Assembly: GCA_013115145.1 (NCBI GenBank)
Contig: JAAPAO010000001.1
Coordinates: 248,001-312,000, forward strand
Length of the DNA stretch: 64,000 nucleotides
Direction: 5' to 3'
DNA from: Perkinsus chesapeaki ATCC PRA-425
Taxonomy: Eukaryota > Protista > Perkinsozoa
The translations under genes and the position numbers were made by a program. Of the stretch, positions 50,556 through 64,000 are shown piece after piece. Below the pieces are notes generated by a model that searched no databases, had not been told where the DNA came from, and was given only the letters and a program-made list of their open reading frames with translations. Numbering within the stretch: position 1 is the first letter of the stretch; every line of letters starts with the position of its first letter.

Positions 50556-52463
50556 GGATACGACCACGTATGGGACTTGATCGATGAGGTTTACTCCGAC
50601 CATCTGGTGAAGGTGCGCTGGTGCCGGCAACTGAGAGTGCGATGCCTACCTGCCTACCCGTTAGGGTCCCCTACGGAGCGGCATAAAGGAGATTAGGAAC
50701 ACATGGCGGAAGGTCGGTTTCAAAAGTAACAGGCAGCGGAAACCTTCAAGGCGGCGAGGGCAGGGATCAAAGGAGGACAGCAACAGCACCACTACCAGTG
50801 GCAGCGCACTCGGCCATGGAAGCTCCAAACCCTCCACGACGAGCACCAAGCGGAAGCGAGAATCTAAAGTGAAGGACCCTCAGGTGACCGTTCTTCCTTG
50901 CCATTCCGGGCTCGAAGTCCTCTCCCAGGAATTGCCTCTTGATGCCGCGGAATCACAGTCTGGTCTACATGCGAAGAACGTTGCCCTGTGGTGGTGCGAT
51001 GGTTGCGGCTGGAACTCTGAGAAATCCTCTGATTCCCTAGAATGTGCATCATGCAAGGTGCAGGTACATAAACAATGTGCCGGTATCAACTGGGGTGAGC
51101 TCGTTAGTCCACCACGGTTTGATGCTTTATTTCCCTTTAGGTACGGAAGGCCTCTGTCAACTGTGTGCGTCCGTGGCCAAGACGGAAGGGGCATCTCTGG
51201 ACGATATGAAAAACTTCGGATTGGAGCTCGTCTCGGAGCGCAGCCCTTGCAAGATATGCAATCAGAAGTAGGCGAACTCCGAGTGGGCTGATGAAGATGA
51301 TGGCGACTTTGCTCAGTTTCCTCGATTGCACAAGCGACTCTGGTGATGTTGTTCGAATCGGCCTGTATATGGTGGCTGCAGGTTGCCATTGGGCGCATGC
51401 TTCATGCAATAAATACTCCTCTCAAGAGCCCTCCTCGACATGCCAATTTGAAGACCTTTGTGGCGGCTTAGCCGGAGCATCAGTATGCTGTAAAGCTCCT
51501 CACTGCCAGATTGCTGTTCACGCCCTCTGCGCTGCCTTTCGGTTTCGGGTGACTCCCAGCGAGCCGAAGTTCACTTGTGACTCCCACCTTGCCGTTGGAT
51601 CACCAAAGGCATCGTCGCTCGAGGAGAGTGAAGCCTCTCCTGATTCGAGCAACTCACGGTACCACCGCAACAAGATCCAGTTGATGGAGTCGCCGATCGC
51701 CAGTAGAAGGCGCCGACGGCGGCCCGACTATGAGATGCCCAAACCTGCGGAGCCACCGAAGGTGCCGCTGTTCGAACCGGAAACCCGCCGAGAGGCAAGC
51801 TCGCCGTCACCGCCGCCCGGAGGGACGGCTGCTGCTGGCAACGAGCCAACACGAAAGAGTTTTCGAGGAAACAACATTGCGGATAAGATCGCCGCAGCCC
51901 TTCAGGATCCCGAAGACGCGCCGGAGGAGCGAACTCGATTGATGCAGGAAGCACGAGTTATAGAACAGAAGCTTCACGAGAGGGAACGGAAGGGAGGATA
52001 CCTCAGCCTGGCCCGCCAGTTCATGAAGTTCCTGGCAAAACGTGATTCAGTGCCACGGATACAACTGAGAAGGCATGAAGTGGATGGCGCGTATGTCGGG
52101 ATGTTGGAGCCTTGGCAATTGCAGAATGAAGAATCTTTGAAGGAGCGTGAACGGTTGGATGCCAAAAACAGAAGGATGGTTACTCTCGGGGATATCAACC
52201 GAGATGTGGATGACGACATCCCTTCACATGACGTGGAGGCCACTACCGCCCCAACGGAAGGCCTTGCGATCGGACTCAACGGTTTGCCGGTAATGCCAGA
52301 TCCATCGCCCTCTGAGCGAGTGCCGCCCGGAGAAGGTGCAATGAAGAACGACATACCGTCGCCTGACTATGTTGATCTGATGGAATCAGAATCGGAATAT
52401 GATGGTGAAAGCTCCGATTCTGAAGCGACCAAGAATCGTCGACGTGCATGGTGGGAGACTTGA
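50556..52463 (+). pseudogene. 5'-truncated PHD/ePHD gene copy
   Basis: Lacks the equivalent of 39057-40065. It is otherwise in frame, with several amino-acid changes relative to copy 1. Confidence 0.6.
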
Positions 52464-52803: not shown

Positions 52804-54308
52804 CTAGAGTTGATCGTCAATCTTCTCACCGTTCTCAAGCGCTTGCTCCAACTTCACCAATTTGGCGCATCCCTCAACCATAATATTGACCAACTGAACT
52901 TCGCTCTTACCAATCCTATCCTCGTTGGAGATATCGTAGATACCACCAACAGAGGCAGAGTCGACACCAGAACCACCACGAGCTTGAAGACCAAGCTTCT
53001 TGCAAATAGCCTTAAAGTCTGGTCTAGCAGAGAGTAGTGGAACCTTCATCATAGCTGAAGCACGGAGGCCAGTTCCCAAGTTACTCGGGCATGTGAGGAT
53101 GAACCCGAGGTGGTCGTTGTGCATGAAGTCGTAGCCCTCGCTCTTCAAAACATCTTGTACACCATTGACGGCGATGCAGAATCGCTTGAAAATTCTCTTA
53201 ATATCAGCACCCTTCTCCATGGAGATAATTCTCATGTGATCTTCCTCATTGAGCCAGACGAGGAAATTCTTTTCGTCATTGTGGAAGATGCCGCGAGCAT
53301 CAGGCCAGTGGCGACCCATTCCGCTGGATAAAAGTAGAGTGGAATCAGGTTCTTGGAAAAGGAAGTGATTCTCTCTCATGTCTTCTTCCTGATCTTTCGA
53401 CATTCCACCGGGCTTCGGCTCGTAACTCTGCGATCCATGAAGAGGGTAGTAGTCACCCTTGAGCTCCTCCTTAAGATTGAGGAGACCCTTTACAATAATG
53501 CGCTCGAGCTCACGCCTCTCCTCGAAGGTAACACTCGGGGGCAAACGAATGCCACGAACCGAGCGACCAGTGCGGACACGAGTGGAGATGACGTACCTGA
53601 AGATAGGTCAGATCCGACGAACTGCAGACAAAAGCCAGACGGTCGCCTGACTTTCCAGTGGGATCGATGGGGGTGTCGGAGACCTTGGAGAAGTCAAGGT
53701 CGGTGGTATGCTTCGCGTCAGCAGGGAAACCACCATGGCGACGATCAATTACAGGATCGAAACTGAAAAGGGAAGACATTAAGCCTCAAACGTCATATGA
53801 AACCTACAGATCCTTGAAAACTTCGTAGCTCTCTTCATCTCCAGCAACAAGGCCAACGGTCTTGATGGAAGGGTGCCCGGGGTTGTCAACGCCGGTCTTG
53901 AGGCATTTTCCAAGGTTAACACCTGAGAAGAGCGTTCATCTGGCACAGAGACACGACTGGTTACCATTCTTTGTAGTCTTCCCCTTCAGCTTCTCGTAGA
54001 TTTCTGGTTTTTCGCACATCAGTTCTGCCATATAGCTGCTGTGTTTGGACAAATCAGGCAACTTCTCCGGGAGCTGAAGGGACAGAATGGAACGTGATAA
54101 TAATTCTCCAAGGCACAGTGGAGCTATGGAACGTTAAAGGCGCAGTGGTAAGTGTCAATCAGTGATTGGTGAGAAGTCTTACATTGTCGGGATCGAAAGT
54201 TGCCTTCTTCTCCTCGCACATATACTCCTTGTCACCGAGGCCTAACTTGATCCACTCGGGGAGATGTTCAACGGTGGGGGCCAGTCCAGCGGGAGGGTAA
54301 GAAGCCAT
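52804..54308 (-). CDS. Creatine-kinase-type phosphagen kinase, copy 2
   Basis: Same exon structure as copy 1. It has [10 protein letters not shown] instead of [10 protein letters not shown] and a few other substitutions. Confidence 0.92.
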
Positions 54309-55804: not shown

Positions 55805-56210
55805 ATGTCAATACTGACTGCCTTAGTTCTCGCTCTCGCTCTCATGAGCACTGCCGTGGGAAACCCGTACCCACGGTTTTCGCCGGCATGGTGGGCCTGG
55901 GAGCAAGAGTGTGGCCAGGGCCACGTGGTACCGAATGAGGGGTCCGGCGGGTGCTGGGAGGAAGGCATGACCTCAACCAGCCCCACTCCTCTACCCACCA
56001 CCACACCACCGCCGGATGATATCGGCTCGGAGACAACTGAGAGAAATTTCCGAGCCCACAGAAGCAGTGGATCGAGGCCCATGTAAGTTTTGCTGAGGAA
56101 AATTCACTAAATTACTGTATAACTGTATAAAGACTCTCTTGCTTTTGTTCAGGCTCGATCTAATTGGGTACTGTGGGTTGCTGACTTTGGCCCTCTACGG
56201 CGGTCTGTGA
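55805..56210 (+). CDS. Small secreted, probably GPI-anchored surface protein (111 aa), NPYPRFSPAWW family copy 1
   Basis: Exon 55805-56082, GT-AG intron 56083-56152, exon 56153-56210. It encodes a signal peptide, a Trp-rich Cys-x13-Cys module, a Thr/Pro stalk and the hydrophobic tail LIGYCGLLTLALYGGL*. Confidence 0.75.
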
Positions 56211-56817
56211 AGATAATCAGCTCATCAAAAGGTACGTTCGAGTGAGACTCGCTCGAGTCGTGACTACGTAGTTCGTACGTAGTGATTCACGACTCTTGAA
56301 CTTCACGACTCGTGGATTCAGACACAATTCAACAACGTGACTCTTCCTCAGTTACCTCGGACCCAGGCCTTATTTGATGAGCACCAGTGGTGGTAATGCC
56401 ATCCCTAATTAATATGACTGAGACGGGTCCAATCGTACATTGCAGTGTTGTCATAAAGATATATCCACATTGTTGAGTTACGAGTTAAATTCCAAGGTTT
56501 TCGATAATATTTCATAACTCTCAAGTCGCGACTACATGGATTTCTACTAGTCAGCGTTAGAAAAGAAATGAGGCAAGCTTCAGAGTCTGACCATACCTCC
56601 AATTTAGAAAAGAGGAGTTGCACAGCGGAAGTTGCGCTTGTTAACCGCGCGCGCCCAGAAATGGGCCCCCAACGTAAAGTACGCGCACAGTTTGTCCACG
56701 TCCTACCACGGCGCCACAATTGCCCGTACTACCATTCATAGGACTCTCCACCAAAGACTGTAAAGTAGTGTCTCTGACCGCTAGTAGGTGACACCCCACC
56801 AGGGTTTTACATCACTA

Positions 56818-56839
56818 GGTGTTAGTAACACCGTGTTAC
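56818..56839. mobile_element. Perfect hAT-type excision footprint (target GGTGTTAC)
   Basis: g-gtgtta-g-taacac-c-gtgtta-c. Confidence 0.7.
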
Positions 56840-57146
56840 CTACTGCGTGATACGAGATCCAGACTTCAGATGGACGGGGTAGGCGCGTGGGAGTGACATG
56901 CGTTTGTAGACTGACGGACAACCAAGGGACATGGGCCTGAGCGAATTGAAGCTTAGCTCAAACCACAACGTGTGCAAGACTTAAACTTCAAGTTGAAATA
57001 CCCGAGATGGAGATAATCCCCAGGGGATTCCCCATCGGGGAAATTACTGAACGTTGAGTTACTAAAAAGCGAAGATGCACGATGAAGCCGTGTCAGGAGA
57101 CCACTTCAATAGCGGAGGGACTCTCAAGCACAGCAGCAGACCAGCC

Positions 57147-57168
57147 GTAGCCACTGGCTACTAGCCAG
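57147..57168. mobile_element. Perfect hAT-type excision footprint (target GTAGCCAG)
   Basis: g-tagcca-c-tggcta-c-tagcca-g. Confidence 0.7.
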
Positions 57169-57399
57169 AGGTATTGAATTTCCATTCACTAACAACCAAA
57201 CACCAACGAAGAAAGAAAATGTCATGGAGCTCATGGCGAGTCAATTATACAAATGGTTTCAATGGCAGGCGCTGTGCTTGCGTCCGTTCAACAGCTGCCG
57301 TCGAAGGGACATCAAATGCAACATGACATCATCGTATTCACAGCGTGACCGTAGAATAACAGATGCTGGAGATCCGGTCCTGTATGGCGTCAACGGCGT

Positions 57400-60300
57400 T
57401 GAGCCTCGGAAATTGAACCTACATGAATCCAGCTCAGGAACGCGACTACCACCTCAGAGCGATTCGCACGCATTGGGAGTTGCACTTCGTTCCGGTGTAC
57501 GTGGCGTTCCAGTCTCTCTATTTCCTGACATGCTGCGGTAGCAAGATGTTGTGAATCCGCTGGACCGTGCGGGGATTCCAGTAGACGCCTAAAGTCGAGG
57601 ACCATGACACCGTTTAATAAGGTACAAACGACAGGAAACCATGCACAGGCCTGGCGTTGGGTTAAGAGCGAATAGCAGGTGCCAGAAGCAGCTCACCTGC
57701 TCCAGTCGCAGCTTTTCGCACCGTCGGTCAACTTCCCTTTTCCACTGCATATTGCGCTCATAAAATCGACTGGCCTCGGCAGCTGAATAAAGGACACCCC
57801 TCACTGTGGAATGTACGGAGTGTTCGACGAGATGCTCGTTATCAGTCATTTCCTGAGAAGACAGGATGGGCGAATGTAAGCACTTATACTGGGACTATAG
57901 TGATGTAACTGAAGACGATCCACGTGGTAGGAGAGCTGCAGACTACAGCCTGTAGTATAACTCCATCATTCTGTCACACTGCAACTGTGAACCACAGTGT
58001 CACCCGCCGAAAGTTCTATCTTAAAACTTCAAGAGCCGAGACTTGAGAGCAATTCAAGTACTGTTATACTATAACTTACGAACCGTTATACATGAGGGTT
58101 ATAGGCTATTGATAGTAATCGATTATCTACTCTCTATATACCATCATTACTACAGGATAATCCAAAAGGGACCACCCACTGAGATATCATGCTGCGTGGA
58201 AGAATGTGTGTCTTATGGGCTCTAAACTCTCGCAGAGGTCTCCCTCATGCTTCACGAGCGGTTGATGAAATTCGGGCAACGCCCAGAAATATCTCAATGA
58301 TCAATACGCCCATCAATCAATGAACAATAGACTATACAGAAACGGATGCTGGCTAAATCCGGTTACATTCCACAGATTGCCCCCTTAGCATGCTGGACGA
58401 GCCCGAACGGGTTTGAGTGCTAAACCGGCTTCAAAAGGGGTCAATGATCCCACAGGTACCCCTGCCTGTCATGCTGTCACACAGTCTTACAGCACTGACA
58501 TCTTTGAACGCATAACCCTGTAGATAACTGAGTCGGATAAACCATTCAGAATCTAGAATACAGCAGCCTACAGCAGTTACCGCCCCCCTTCTAGTGAGAA
58601 CAGCGAGTCGAATTGACCCTCGCTCACCTTAGCTAGATCCCGTCGTTGCCTCGCCCATTCCAGTGTCCTCTCTCTCTCCACTTTCCAGGCTTTTGTCCGC
58701 TGATACATACTATCCAGATTACGAGGTACACTACTCGACCTAGTAGTTGCTTTTCGTGGTGATAAACGAGGTGAGAAGGTGCACTAACACACTACCATCA
58801 AACACACACTTGAAAAAAATTACCTCTCGCATCTCCTCAGCTGCTTTCAGAGACCTTGCCTGAACCACCTTTTCTTCTTGTAGTCTACAACGCTCGCGAG
58901 CTCTAGAGTATATGTCACTGCCTCGGGATGGAGCGGTGCGGGGAGTTGATAACTGGTTAACTTCTGGGGTTGCTGTTGAGCTCCGAGGAGTTACGGGTGG
59001 GGCAGCGAGAGCTCTCTGAGACGCACGCCTGATAACGAGCATAGAACACAAGCTTAAGATTCCCAGTGACAGTAGTGTACTTCATCTCACGCGAGTGTAT
59101 GGCAGAGTATGAGCCCATACATTTCCGCCCATGAAAATCCCTAGAAGAATGCTCAATATCTTGCCGGGTCTCATGCACACTAGGCTCACTAGTTCTCCGG
59201 TGCCGACCTGAAAACGAGCGAAAGATCACGTTAAGGGGACAATTTCTCCGGAACTGAGCCTCACTCATCTTTGTTTTATCGGTAGGAGCTAGCGCAGTTT
59301 CGGGCACAGTTGGATGGCGAGTTGCTGTCTTCCCCAGCGACAAACGCTTTGCAACAGGCTTGATTCCACGCAAACTCTGTTTGGCCTTGGCCGCATTTTG
59401 CATTTCAACTCGCAAGCCGGGCTCATCGTCCCTAGGCGGATCCTCCTCCGTTGTTGTATGGGAGCTCTTCGCTTCATTAAGCGTAACATTCACTCCCTCA
59501 TCTGGCAACATACTCGCTACTGGTTCATGTGCTGCAGTCTGGGCCAACGGCGAATCTCGGTACCGCTGCCCTGCTTCGGGCGTTCGGTATCCTGAGCTAG
59601 CCTCTGTACCGTGGAGGTTAGAATACGTCAAGGCCCTAGGCTCAGAAGCTATATCCATCGAGCTTTCACTCGGCTTTGAATGACTATCGTCCCTCCGAAA
59701 CGGGCCCTGTCGACGTGGTGTTAGCAACGCTTTGACAGTCTTAGGGTGGGTGTCCTTCGCCGCCCTCGGGAAACGGCCATCATGATGATCATCGATGATG
59801 GCATCATTGATATGTCGACTAGTTTTTCCCTTTTCTTCCCGCATGCAGTGCCCTGCAAGGCGTTGCTTATCAAACTCAGTTCTTGTTCTAGGAACTGTTC
59901 GCCTCAAAGCTATATCAGAATCCTTGCTTGACAGCCTTCTGACCTATAGGATAAACTGTTACTGTAGTAACAGGGGGTACTACAGTAAGAGATAAAGAGC
60001 CTGCTTCAGACTGTCGAGCCTTCGATCGACTGCTCCCGTGATTTTCTCCCCATGCGGCTTGGCCTTTTCCCGCAACCCTCAGCCTGGCTATCTGCTGCAT
60101 TTTTCTGTACCGATCTTCTTTCGAAGTTTCATCTGGTAGCTCGGATATTGTCCCTCGCGAGTTAGGTTGAGCCTCGACGACCTGGCGACGTTACACATCG
60201 GTTACACCACCAGAAGTACCGGTCGGGAACAGTTTTATAATCACAAAGAGACCTGCCTGCCGTTCGCGCCGAGTCACAGTAAGTTATTGTCAATAACGTA

Positions 60301-60713
60301 AAATAGGGATTCAATACTTGCGACTTGAAGACTTCAAGTTGAAGTCTAATGCCTCCCTCATCACCTTAGGATCGGTTGACTCCGAGCGAAACTCTTCCGA
60401 AGGGCGTTCGGAGAGCGAACACCGATTGCCACTCCCTACGCTGAAATCACCAATACCAAATTTTTCACTTTTGAGTCCCGGCAGCGAACGATCGCCTGAG
60501 GTATCCAGCCAACAATCAACCGATGACAAAGTCCTGGGTACCAGATATGGTGGATGGCGAAAGATCGCTTATTATCGTTCGTTGTATCCGTTCTTGGGCT
60601 GCACTAACCCTGCTTTGAAGCTCAATGGATTCCCAGTTCGATAGGTCGGTCACCACATCGGGTGACAGACACCCCACGGGAATCTCAGAGGGTGAGCTTC
60701 CCGATTCGGTCAT
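57400..60713 (-). CDS. Large hypothetical disordered/coiled-coil protein (multi-exon)
   Basis: 316-aa open exon 58957-59907, plus exons such as DIYSRARERCRLQEEKVVQARSLKAAEEMRE-CTFSP and SRFYERNMQWKREVDRRCEKLRLEQ. The ends are uncertain. Confidence 0.5.
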
Positions 60714-61263
60714 AAAATATATTATACAAGCAATTAATCAACTGAGAAACGCGTTTATTAACCGCATGTACATACGAAACCAAATACATCTTTGGTCCCT
60801 GCCAGGCAGTGCCCAAGCCAGCCAGGTTTAACGTGAATGAGATGACCTCATCATTAGGCGACCAACGGCTGGTAATACTCAGCCAATAGCACAGTACTAC
60901 CTGCCCCTATCCTATCACCCTGCTATCCTATTAGACTGTTATCCCTTTCATCGGAACATCCCCACCGTAAAAGCGTTCCTGTTGACAGCAAAGAACGAAC
61001 TCAAAACAGACAGAAAACGAGAAATAATCATTAACATTTTGATCCATGATCACAGTGTGAGTCGAGATACGCTGAGAGCGCATAACAAAACTCGCTCGCC
61101 CGAAATCGATCGTCCGCGACCGACAACATGTGAACCGTTGTATGCATCACTAGGATAATGTCGCAAGTTGGTCACAACGAGAAATCGGACTCGACCTGTC
61201 ATTTACAATTGCATAAACACTAAGGGAACTTAAAGTTTCAGTTCGTTTTACTAATTATCACCA

Positions 61264-61659
61264 ATGCCGTCTTATATGGTCCTCATCGTCATCGCTTTCC
61301 TCTCCGCCGTGGGAGTTGCTGGGGAGAACCCGTATCCTAGGTTCTCTCCAGCGTGGTGGTCTTGGGAGGCTGAGTGCAACCCGGATTACTCGGTCGGTAA
61401 TGAGACTTTTCCCCATGTGGAAAACAGCAATCGGCCACCTCACCTCCCTTGGAAGCCACTTCACAACCCTGGGAGGATGGCTCGGATGTTACTACTACAT
61501 GGAAACTCCGAGCCAGCGACAAAAGCGATGCCAAAATGACGTAAGTACATTGTCGATAAATATTGATTTGTATAGTCTGGAATGCTATTTGTTTTCTTCA
61601 GGTATTCAGCTCTCGGCTCATGGGGATTGCTCACGGTGATGGCGGTGAATATTCTGTGA
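61264..61659 (+). CDS. Small secreted, probably GPI-anchored surface protein, NPYPRFSPAWW family copy 2 (apparent 1-nt frameshift at 61407-61414)
   Basis: Exon 61264-61540, intron 61541-61601, exon 61602-61659. It has the same architecture as copy 1 once one base is restored. Tail: YSALGSWGLLTVMAVNIL*. Confidence 0.7.
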
Positions 61660-62304
61660 GCGACAGTGATGACCACGTAGGTGGGTGAGCCAGTAACAAC
61701 ATTCAACACACCCACGATTCATGTCCTCTCAGGTGGTCTGCAAGTGCGAGAAGTACCATTTTCTAATTCGTTGGATAAACCTGCAAAGCAGTTACTTTCA
61801 TAGTGATTTGCGTTCATAGTTCTCGGGGGTCCCTACGCAATTACACTTGGCATGAATTGCACAAGGTACTTGGCGTAGTAGTTCCGTGCTGTAGAATGGC
61901 TCTACATGGTCTACGAGACTCGATAATCGACTAGTACCGAGTTGCAACATTTGTTCGTTATTCTCATAGGCCACCCTTTATCACCCGCTCCCGCCAGGCC
62001 ATAAGGCTCCTAGTGAACACCATTGGTAGCATAGGCTTCTAGTGAATGCATGTATCCTTAGTCGGTTACCAGCCGAGTCTCCAATGTCTGGCGTATTCAT
62101 CTAACTCTTAACCACGAATCGCAGAGACATTTAGAAAAACTACCGCACGACCGTCAAGGCTGTTCACTGCATTACCTAGTTCCTATTCCCAGCCTGCCTG
62201 TAAGAGAGTTAACACAACATCTGGCCGTTCCTATGAAACCACCTAGTCATTAACGTTTTCTAATAGTCCCAAAGCACCATCAACCCTTTAACGGGATAGA
62301 ACGG

Positions 62305-64000
62305 CTACAACACGCGGTTGCGAATATCCTCCAATTTCTTCATGACCTCCTGCGGAGTCTTGTCCATATCGACAGCGATCTGGCGTTGCTTTTCGGCAGG
62401 CAGCTCATAATATCTGATCACAGCCACACGTTAGGACAGTTCAAGCGCACAGTTGGTCCTAAAACCAGCTGGACACCTAACTGTGCAGAATACCCTCTCA
62501 TTGGTATCCGTATACTTTCTAGAAATTACCCCCATCGTGCTCACACGCCCACTTACACTTCACATAGATCGGCATCGATGAAGTTTTTGACAGGATGGTA
62601 GAAGGAGCGGTACATAACGTGTTCGCGCCCTGTTAGACTCGGAGAAGCTGCAGTATTCCGCATATGCATCTCAAGTGCCTAGCATGAACAGTCCACACTA
62701 CAGAGCAAAGCCGAGTTTTCGGCGGCTACCTGCAGGAAGGTGTGCTCTCGCTTCGAAGAGAAGGGATACAGTGCCCCGATAGTTCCGAGAACCGTAGAAT
62801 ATATGATGATTTCAGCGCCACCCGCTACCATTGTCACCTGAAATAGTTACAGTAGTGGAAGCTCATAGCTATAACGATCCATTACTCTTTGAAGCGAAGT
62901 TACCGTCTCTCCAACGTGGAAGTGGCCGATCAAATCCATCTGAAGGAACAACCAATGATTTCCGCCAATGGAAGCTGGTGAATGCAGATCGACTAGGCGC
63001 AGGGTACCGAAAGGATCGATCATAAATATACACCTTACTTTAAATGTATTGCCGGATACATAGTCATTATCACGACCAGGAACCAATCTCAATGTAGATA
63101 TGCCTTCAGCCTCAACGACAGGACTGAAAGTCGGTAGACTGTGAAAACGAAGATGAAGTATACTACAACGTACCGTCCCCAAGCACCAGCGTCCTTGGCA
63201 TCTGAAGGTACTCGCAGGATGGCGAGGTTGTCAAACTTATCCCCAACAACTATGGTCTGCGGGCAAGAAGAAATAGCGCATCACTAGAGACGGTAACATC
63301 GAACTCACGTTGTAATCAAGTACAGCCGCGGCTGTGATGCACCTCGGATAGGTATCATCCGAGATAACCTACAAGACAGCAGCCAGGTCACAGTCCCATG
63401 AGTTGTAACGGCAAGACTTACCTGCATCTGATTGTCGCTGTACCTCCATCTCAAAACCATAATACTATCCCTACTATCAGCGGCAAAGATGCGATCCTTG
63501 TTCACATCGAGCCACATAATTCCACCGGACTCCGGTAAGAACTTATACTCACATTTTTTCAGCAGCCGCTTTTTGCCCAATTCGTAGATCCTGAACCCAC
63601 ACGCAAATCCATGCGCAATGTCTATGGTAGAGTCCTTACCGTAGAACGGGTGCCACCGTTGGAGACCCGCGCAGGGCAACCAGTAACCGTCCTTCGAAGG
63701 GATACATTGCAGAAGGGACGCCTAAGCAGAGGCGTGCATAGCTGCAGTCGAGAAGCGAGCCTCGTGGACTTACCTTCTAGCGGAGTTACGTGAATGAGCT
63801 GTAGGTTGTAGCTCTCATCGTAAAGATACGTCTTGATGTAGCACTTGCCATGGGCCGATCTCGAGGGATTATGTGGATCGACACCAGTAGCAGTACCAAC
63901 TACGAGACACGGGCGGTTATCCTGACATTCGCAATGTCGCCATATAATAAGCCTAGGGAATCACCTTGAGCTGGTAGAAATAACAGACAGTCATAGCAGT
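62305..64000 (-). CDS. SF3B3: Splicing factor 3B subunit 3 (SAP130/Rse1), 3' portion; continues beyond the window
   Basis: RIYELGKKRLLKKCE, DRIFAADSRDS, DDTYPRCITAAAVLDYNTIVVGDKFDN, GHFHVGETVTSLQR, C-terminal DKTPQEVMKKLEDIRNRVL*. Confidence 0.93.

Follow-up and report, generated by a model that had tools for sequence, protein, structure and literature searches.

In MSP2 of Plasmodium falciparum, a small and mostly disordered coat protein of an alveolate parasite that is held by a glycosylphosphatidylinositol (GPI) anchor, the N-terminal stretch and the region preceding the anchor are conserved, and the centre between them is variable. The mucins and procyclins of trypanosomatids (TcMUC and TcSMUG of Trypanosoma cruzi, EP and GPEET of T. 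brucei) form multigene families whose products combine a signal peptide and a GPI signal with a stalk rich in Thr/Pro or Glu/Pro; the ends of these proteins are conserved while the middle varies. A similar plan is found in two genes on the forward strand of a 64,000-nucleotide stretch of the genome of the clam parasite Perkinsus chesapeaki ATCC PRA-425 (contig JAAPAO010000001.1, positions 248,001 to 312,000; hereafter the window). They lie at window positions 55805-56210 (copy 1) and 61264-61659 (copy 2). We consider it probable, although by no means assured, that the two genes are members of a small secretory family restricted to Perkinsus, whose products would be GPI-anchored, mucin-like surface or wall proteins bearing a conserved aromatic tip.

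The likeness to the described systems concerns the layout and not the sequence. The Perkinsus proteins had no Pfam match to MSP2, which is about twice as long, contains repeats and does not possess a Trp-rich motif. The trypanosomatid families belong to another lineage, are unrelated in sequence, comprise tens to hundreds of genes compared to the seven loci that we found in P. chesapeaki, and have no aromatic tip. Fungal GPI cell-wall proteins also have a stalk rich in Ser and Thr between a signal peptide and a GPI signal, and expose their functional N-terminal part outward, but they are much larger, with folded N-terminal domains, and show no homology to the family. In the ESM Atlas, the named protein that came closest, with a score of 0.76, was vertebrate CD24 (PF14984), a very small GPI-anchored peptide of mucin-like type. 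All of the scores there were lower than 0.85, and that of CD24 is under the level of kinship with no common motif, so it is a lead and an analogy of layout only. The family appears to be a genus-restricted one of a known general kind, the small GPI-type mucin-like coat proteins, with a tip motif that seems, from the comparisons made here, to be undescribed. Its display at the cell surface is probable.

The first-pass annotation of the window, made from the sequence alone, had described a family of two members. Both genes were correctly placed, with a shared module directly after a hydrophobic leader (19 residues in copy 1, 21 in copy 2), but the family proved to be larger. When the whole P. 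chesapeaki assembly was searched, first with copy 1 and afterwards with a profile of the family, seven loci were obtained with hidden Markov model E-values from 1e-13 to 1e-38, and P. olseni contributed at least three further protein clusters, which have the tip, the LRG motif described below and the hydrophobic tail in common with them. Four of the seven loci share one strand of contig C1, where they are clustered within 28 kb amid ordinary genes: copy 1 (C1:303805), copy 2 (C1:309264), a single-exon gene of 130 residues at C1:318455 that matches the public protein FOL47_000093 exactly, and a probably decayed copy at C1:331996-332139, which has no in-frame ATG, a replaced third Trp and an early stop. 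The remaining three are at C20:433-726, C3282:85056-85346 and C3042:4587-4934. All precursors are very small, about 100-145 residues. A degenerate DNA pattern for the tip gave seven matches in the assembly and one in the reversed control. Two such patterns recovered the seven loci and a few chance matches, those on C245, C3059, C442, C843 and C3370, and revealed no additional members. A chance origin of the motif is thereby excluded.

The conserved part of the module is shorter than first described. The first-pass annotation had reported a near-invariant module, and its conservation is real; in the family alignments, however, the core is reduced to about 15 residues, NP[FY]P.[FY]S.AWW.WE, in which Asn-Pro, Ser and Trp-Trp are invariant; three other residues, a second Pro, a third Trp and a Glu, come close to this. 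We compared the 15 module codons in 21 pairs of paralogues. The mean synonymous difference per site (pS) was 0.79, which is saturated, while the mean non-synonymous difference (pN) was 0.19, and most of the non-synonymous change fell on three free positions. Between copies 1 and 2, the module differs by two residues and about 8.5 of 9 synonymous sites. Saturated synonymous sites together with a low pN indicate that the duplicates are old and that the tip has been held by selection on the protein. The tip is therefore under strong purifying selection at the protein level, as the earlier view of a conserved tip on a diverging protein implied, and neither a recent duplication nor an element acting in DNA or RNA can explain its conservation. 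The same result bears on the idea that the open frames are not genes at all and that the motif reflects chance or repeat-derived similarity. This idea might draw on the very small size of the genes, on three loci without annotation and on two annotated models that conflict with the family layout. It is contradicted by the saturation of synonymous sites with residues kept in seven paralogues and a second species, and the whole three-part layout is common to the family; we regard it as barely credible.

A loop closed by two cysteines follows the tip in some members. A spacing of 13 residues, which the first-pass annotation had reported for both of its genes, was found in copy 1, in the second reading frame of copy 2 and in one P. 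olseni protein. It did not hold as a feature of the family: the spacing is 14 in the gene at C1:318455 and 15 in another P. olseni protein, and the cysteine pair is absent from the members on C20, C3282 and C3042. The loop of 13-15 residues is thus a feature of one subfamily only. A second short motif, (G)LRG, stands just before the tail and appears as NFRA in copy 1 and KLRA in copy 2. It is placed 5-12 residues upstream of small residues that would suit an omega site, the point of GPI attachment.

Copy 1 is intact. Its first exon extends from the ATG at 55805 to 56082 (+), according to our reading of the sequence and the listing of open frames. It begins with a hydrophobic leader of 19 residues (55805..55861), a predicted signal peptide ending in A-V-G, with a mean Kyte-Doolittle hydropathy of 2.58 over residues 3-15. 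The leader is followed by the Trp-rich module of 17 residues from Asn20 to Cys36 (55862..55912), to which the alignments and the selection test apply, by the aligned Cys36-x13-Cys50 loop of the subfamily (55910..55954), and by an acidic stalk rich in Ser, Thr and Pro (55955..56082). The stalk was also recognized in the alignments, and it was disordered in the AlphaFold2 model, where its predicted local distance difference test score (pLDDT) was below 50. It ends with the NFRA variant and a candidate omega region, S-S-G-S. A phase-2 intron of 70 nucleotides, GTAAGT...TTCAG (56083-56152), separates the first exon from a last exon of 58 nucleotides (56153-56210) that encodes an uncharged hydrophobic tail and the stop codon. 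The junctions had been predicted from the sequence alone, and the predicted splice product is exactly the public protein FOL47_000089 (111 residues), from which alone we took the joined copy 1 product.

Copy 2 (+) repeats this structure with one defect. Its first exon (61264-61540, from the same reading and listing) encodes a hydrophobic leader of 21 residues (61264..61326) and the module of 17 residues (61327..61377); its phase-2 intron of 61 nucleotides (61541-61601) begins with GTAAGT at the same position as in copy 1, and its last exon (61602-61659) again consists of 58 nucleotides encoding a hydrophobic tail and the stop codon. These correspondences between the two genes had already been recognized, as had the need for a frame repair in copy 2. 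The reading frame changes at a T4C4 run (61405..61415). The ATG frame meets a stop at 61537-61539, and it is another frame that contains the stalk, the splice donor and the motif preceding the tail. The piece in this second frame (61407..61540) holds the Ser/Thr/Pro stalk, the KLRA motif and a cysteine that matches the loop position of copy 1 and the P. olseni relatives. We analyzed the pieces of copy 2 separately, as assembled. The matching cysteine favours a frame break, either real or derived from the assembly, over an intron of 35 nucleotides, and copy 2 is therefore a pseudogene or the site of an assembly error. An intron at 61394-61428 would restore the frame, but we judged it less likely, because its donor would be the weak GTCGGT, a pyrimidine tract is missing and its removal would also delete the cysteine of the conserved loop position.

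Most of the family members are either missing from the public annotation or wrongly spliced in it. The model for copy 2, FOL47_000091 (region 61264-61800), bypasses the stalk by splicing and continues out of frame through the last exon and into the sequence beyond it. It is unfit for the family and looks like an artefact that arose when genes were predicted across the frame break. The name of its UniRef cluster, 'Alpha-carbonic anhydrase domain...', does not fit its sequence. For the C20 gene, the model FOL47_000216 splices out a hydrophobic tail that is present in the plain open frame. The members on C3282 and C3042 were absent from the public proteins in all of our protein searches and seem to be unannotated.

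The layout of a signal peptide, a stalk and a hydrophobic C-terminus, which had been proposed for the two genes, was found in every full-length member when we applied rule-based checks to the full-length proteins, of which five are from P. chesapeaki and two from P. olseni. In all seven, a hydrophobic leader of 19-24 residues precedes the module, the middle part contains 34-46% Ser, Thr and Pro and is net acidic, and the final 13-29 residues form an uncharged hydrophobic stretch with no cytosolic tail after it. The last 15 residues have a mean hydropathy of 1.5-2.7. By the same rules, small residues occupy positions -1 and -3 of the leader in all members. In the alignment, candidate omega triplets (S-S-G, S-A-G, G-S-A, C-A-S and others) and a polar spacer stand before the hydrophobic stretch. 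Small omega residues, a polar spacer and a hydrophobic end make up the accepted grammar of GPI attachment signals, which we checked by rule. The P. chesapeaki genome also contains matches to PF04113 (Gpi16/PIG-T) on contig C908, with 83 bits summed, and several loci of the C13 peptidase family PF01650. The presence of both kinds of gene implies that the machinery for GPI anchoring exists in this organism.

On these grounds, we suggest the following route for the proteins. The precursor would enter the endoplasmic reticulum and lose its signal peptide, and the cleavage would expose the 15-residue aromatic tip at the mature N-terminus or within five residues of it. In one subfamily, the tip would be followed by the cysteine loop of 13-15 residues. 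Next would come the short, acidic and disordered Ser/Thr/Pro stalk, probably O-glycosylated and ending in (G)LRG. The most likely fate of the hydrophobic tail would be its replacement by a GPI anchor at the omega site. This would leave the tip exposed at the end of a short mucin-like stalk, either on the cell surface of the parasite or within its wall.

The constant position of the tip, 0-5 residues past the predicted cleavage site, could be read in another way. The tip may be a sorting or pro-region signal that is read within the secretory pathway and directs the proteins into a vacuole or secretory organelle. Parallels are the NPIR-type vacuolar determinant, which in plants directly follows the signal peptide, and, in yeast CPY, the QRPL motif. 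The module starts with Asn-Pro, and it has been kept while the remainder of the protein has diverged. On the other side, 15 residues with three Trp far exceed what the known sorting motifs need, and a hydrophobic C-terminus with omega-like residues points to attachment to a membrane or to GPI. We find this explanation distinctly unlikely. A role in the wall would agree with the same layout as that of the anchored surface proteins. Like fungal GPI cell-wall proteins, they would be cross-linked into the wall of the trophozoite through the GPI remnant or the stalk and the tip would bind a polysaccharide there, so that the proteins would be structural and would not face the host. Sugar-binding surfaces typically carry clustered aromatic residues, and the trophozoites of Perkinsus are walled. 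However, no similarity to carbohydrate-binding modules was detected in Pfam or the Protein Data Bank (PDB), and we hold a structural wall role to be unlikely.

Several points weigh against the reading as GPI-anchored surface or wall proteins. The calls of signal peptides and GPI signals come from rule-based checks, and the hydrophobic end could instead be a plain membrane anchor. Binding of a ligand by the tip is something that we infer only. Two of the seven loci look damaged, namely copy 2 with its frame break and the startless copy at C1:331996 with its early stop, and the profile search found no member in the annotated proteome of P. marinus. On the favourable side, the AlphaFold2 model, built on an alignment of 12 rows, shows helices in the leader, in module residues 27-40 (pLDDT in the 70s) and in the tail, with a disordered stalk. 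Its mean pLDDT was 63, which is a low confidence, and the model is a hint only. Taken together, the observation made in the first-pass annotation was partly confirmed and largely right, and its interpretation was partly supported. The adhesive or host-interacting role that it suggested for the tip is a conjecture.

The intron before the tail is a peculiarity of copies 1 and 2. In the other full-length members, the tail is encoded within the same open frame. Because both introns are of phase 2 and begin with GTAAGT (56083-56088 and 61541-61546), an unspliced transcript ends in an immediate TAA, directly after the last codon of the first exon. Retention of the intron in these two genes would yield a product lacking the tail, which would presumably be soluble. 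This leads to the alternative that the family encodes precursors of released peptides or soluble secreted proteins, for which the hydrophobic end would serve as a transient anchor and the retained intron as the source of a soluble form. Such a view gains from the TAA at the exon border in both copies, and from the predicted mature N-terminus, which begins with Glu or Gln in most members. Five paralogues, however, encode the tail without an intron, and no dibasic processing sites occur around the module. We consider it very improbable. A bolder extension of the anchored model would combine two proposals, that the tip is a mini-domain specific to Perkinsus that binds a molecule of the bivalve host or inserts into host membranes, and that the terminal intron of copies 1 and 2 is a switch between an anchored (spliced) and a shed (retained) form. 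We give little chance to both being true.

In the databases searched, the family seems to be confined to Perkinsus. When the profile was run against every one of 1.84 billion representative proteins, it produced seven matches at E-values up to 0.001, four P. chesapeaki proteins and three P. olseni clusters, all of them labelled 'hypothetical protein', and nothing outside Perkinsus. The view that the motif belongs to no recognized family was borne out: this search returned no named relative, Pfam gave no family at E-values up to 10 for either product of the first exons, and a profile search of the PDB produced noise only, with a best match at E 2.4. The blank in Pfam also covers the Trp-rich antigens of Plasmodium, CD24, TSP1 and the carbohydrate-binding modules as well as MSP2. 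A scan of metagenomes with the tip pattern gave 81 pattern matches, of which none was confirmed. A word-index protein search with one member and two alignments found P. chesapeaki proteins only; it is insensitive for this family, as its last run missed even the known P. olseni relatives.

The W-W-x-W of the tip contains the W-x-x-W consensus of the C-mannosylation sites in thrombospondin repeats, and the W-x-x-W motif is present at six of the seven loci. The Perkinsus proteins have no thrombospondin repeat domain in Pfam, and the idea of a C-mannosylated tip was dropped when no match to PF10034 (the Dpy19 C-mannosyltransferase) was found in the P. chesapeaki genome by a search that is weak on split genes. 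The literature searched contained no paper on GPI-anchored surface proteins of Perkinsus. We also considered PmMOE1, a gene used for tagging with green fluorescent protein (GFP) in P. marinus, as a relative, and rejected it, since the paper gives no link to the family and PmMOE1 tolerates a C-terminal GFP (PMC8062965).

Perkinsus species cause major losses of clams and oysters. With its near-invariant tip, the selection acting on it, its probable display at the surface and its restriction to the genus, the family offers a candidate diagnostic antigen, a target for localization and a subject for tests of binding to host lectins and haemocytes.

The surroundings of the genes on contig C1 are unremarkable. 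The cluster is flanked by a weak match to a PHD/C1-type zinc finger at 50869-51291 (+) and by a CPSF-A-like exon at 63305-63679 (-), both of which are ordinary nuclear genes. An open frame at 52804-53544 (-) encodes a strong ATP:guanido phosphotransferase catalytic domain of the arginine/creatine kinase type (E 2e-63). The copy at C1:331996 lies about 400 nucleotides from the end of the contig and is followed by a G-rich and C-rich run.

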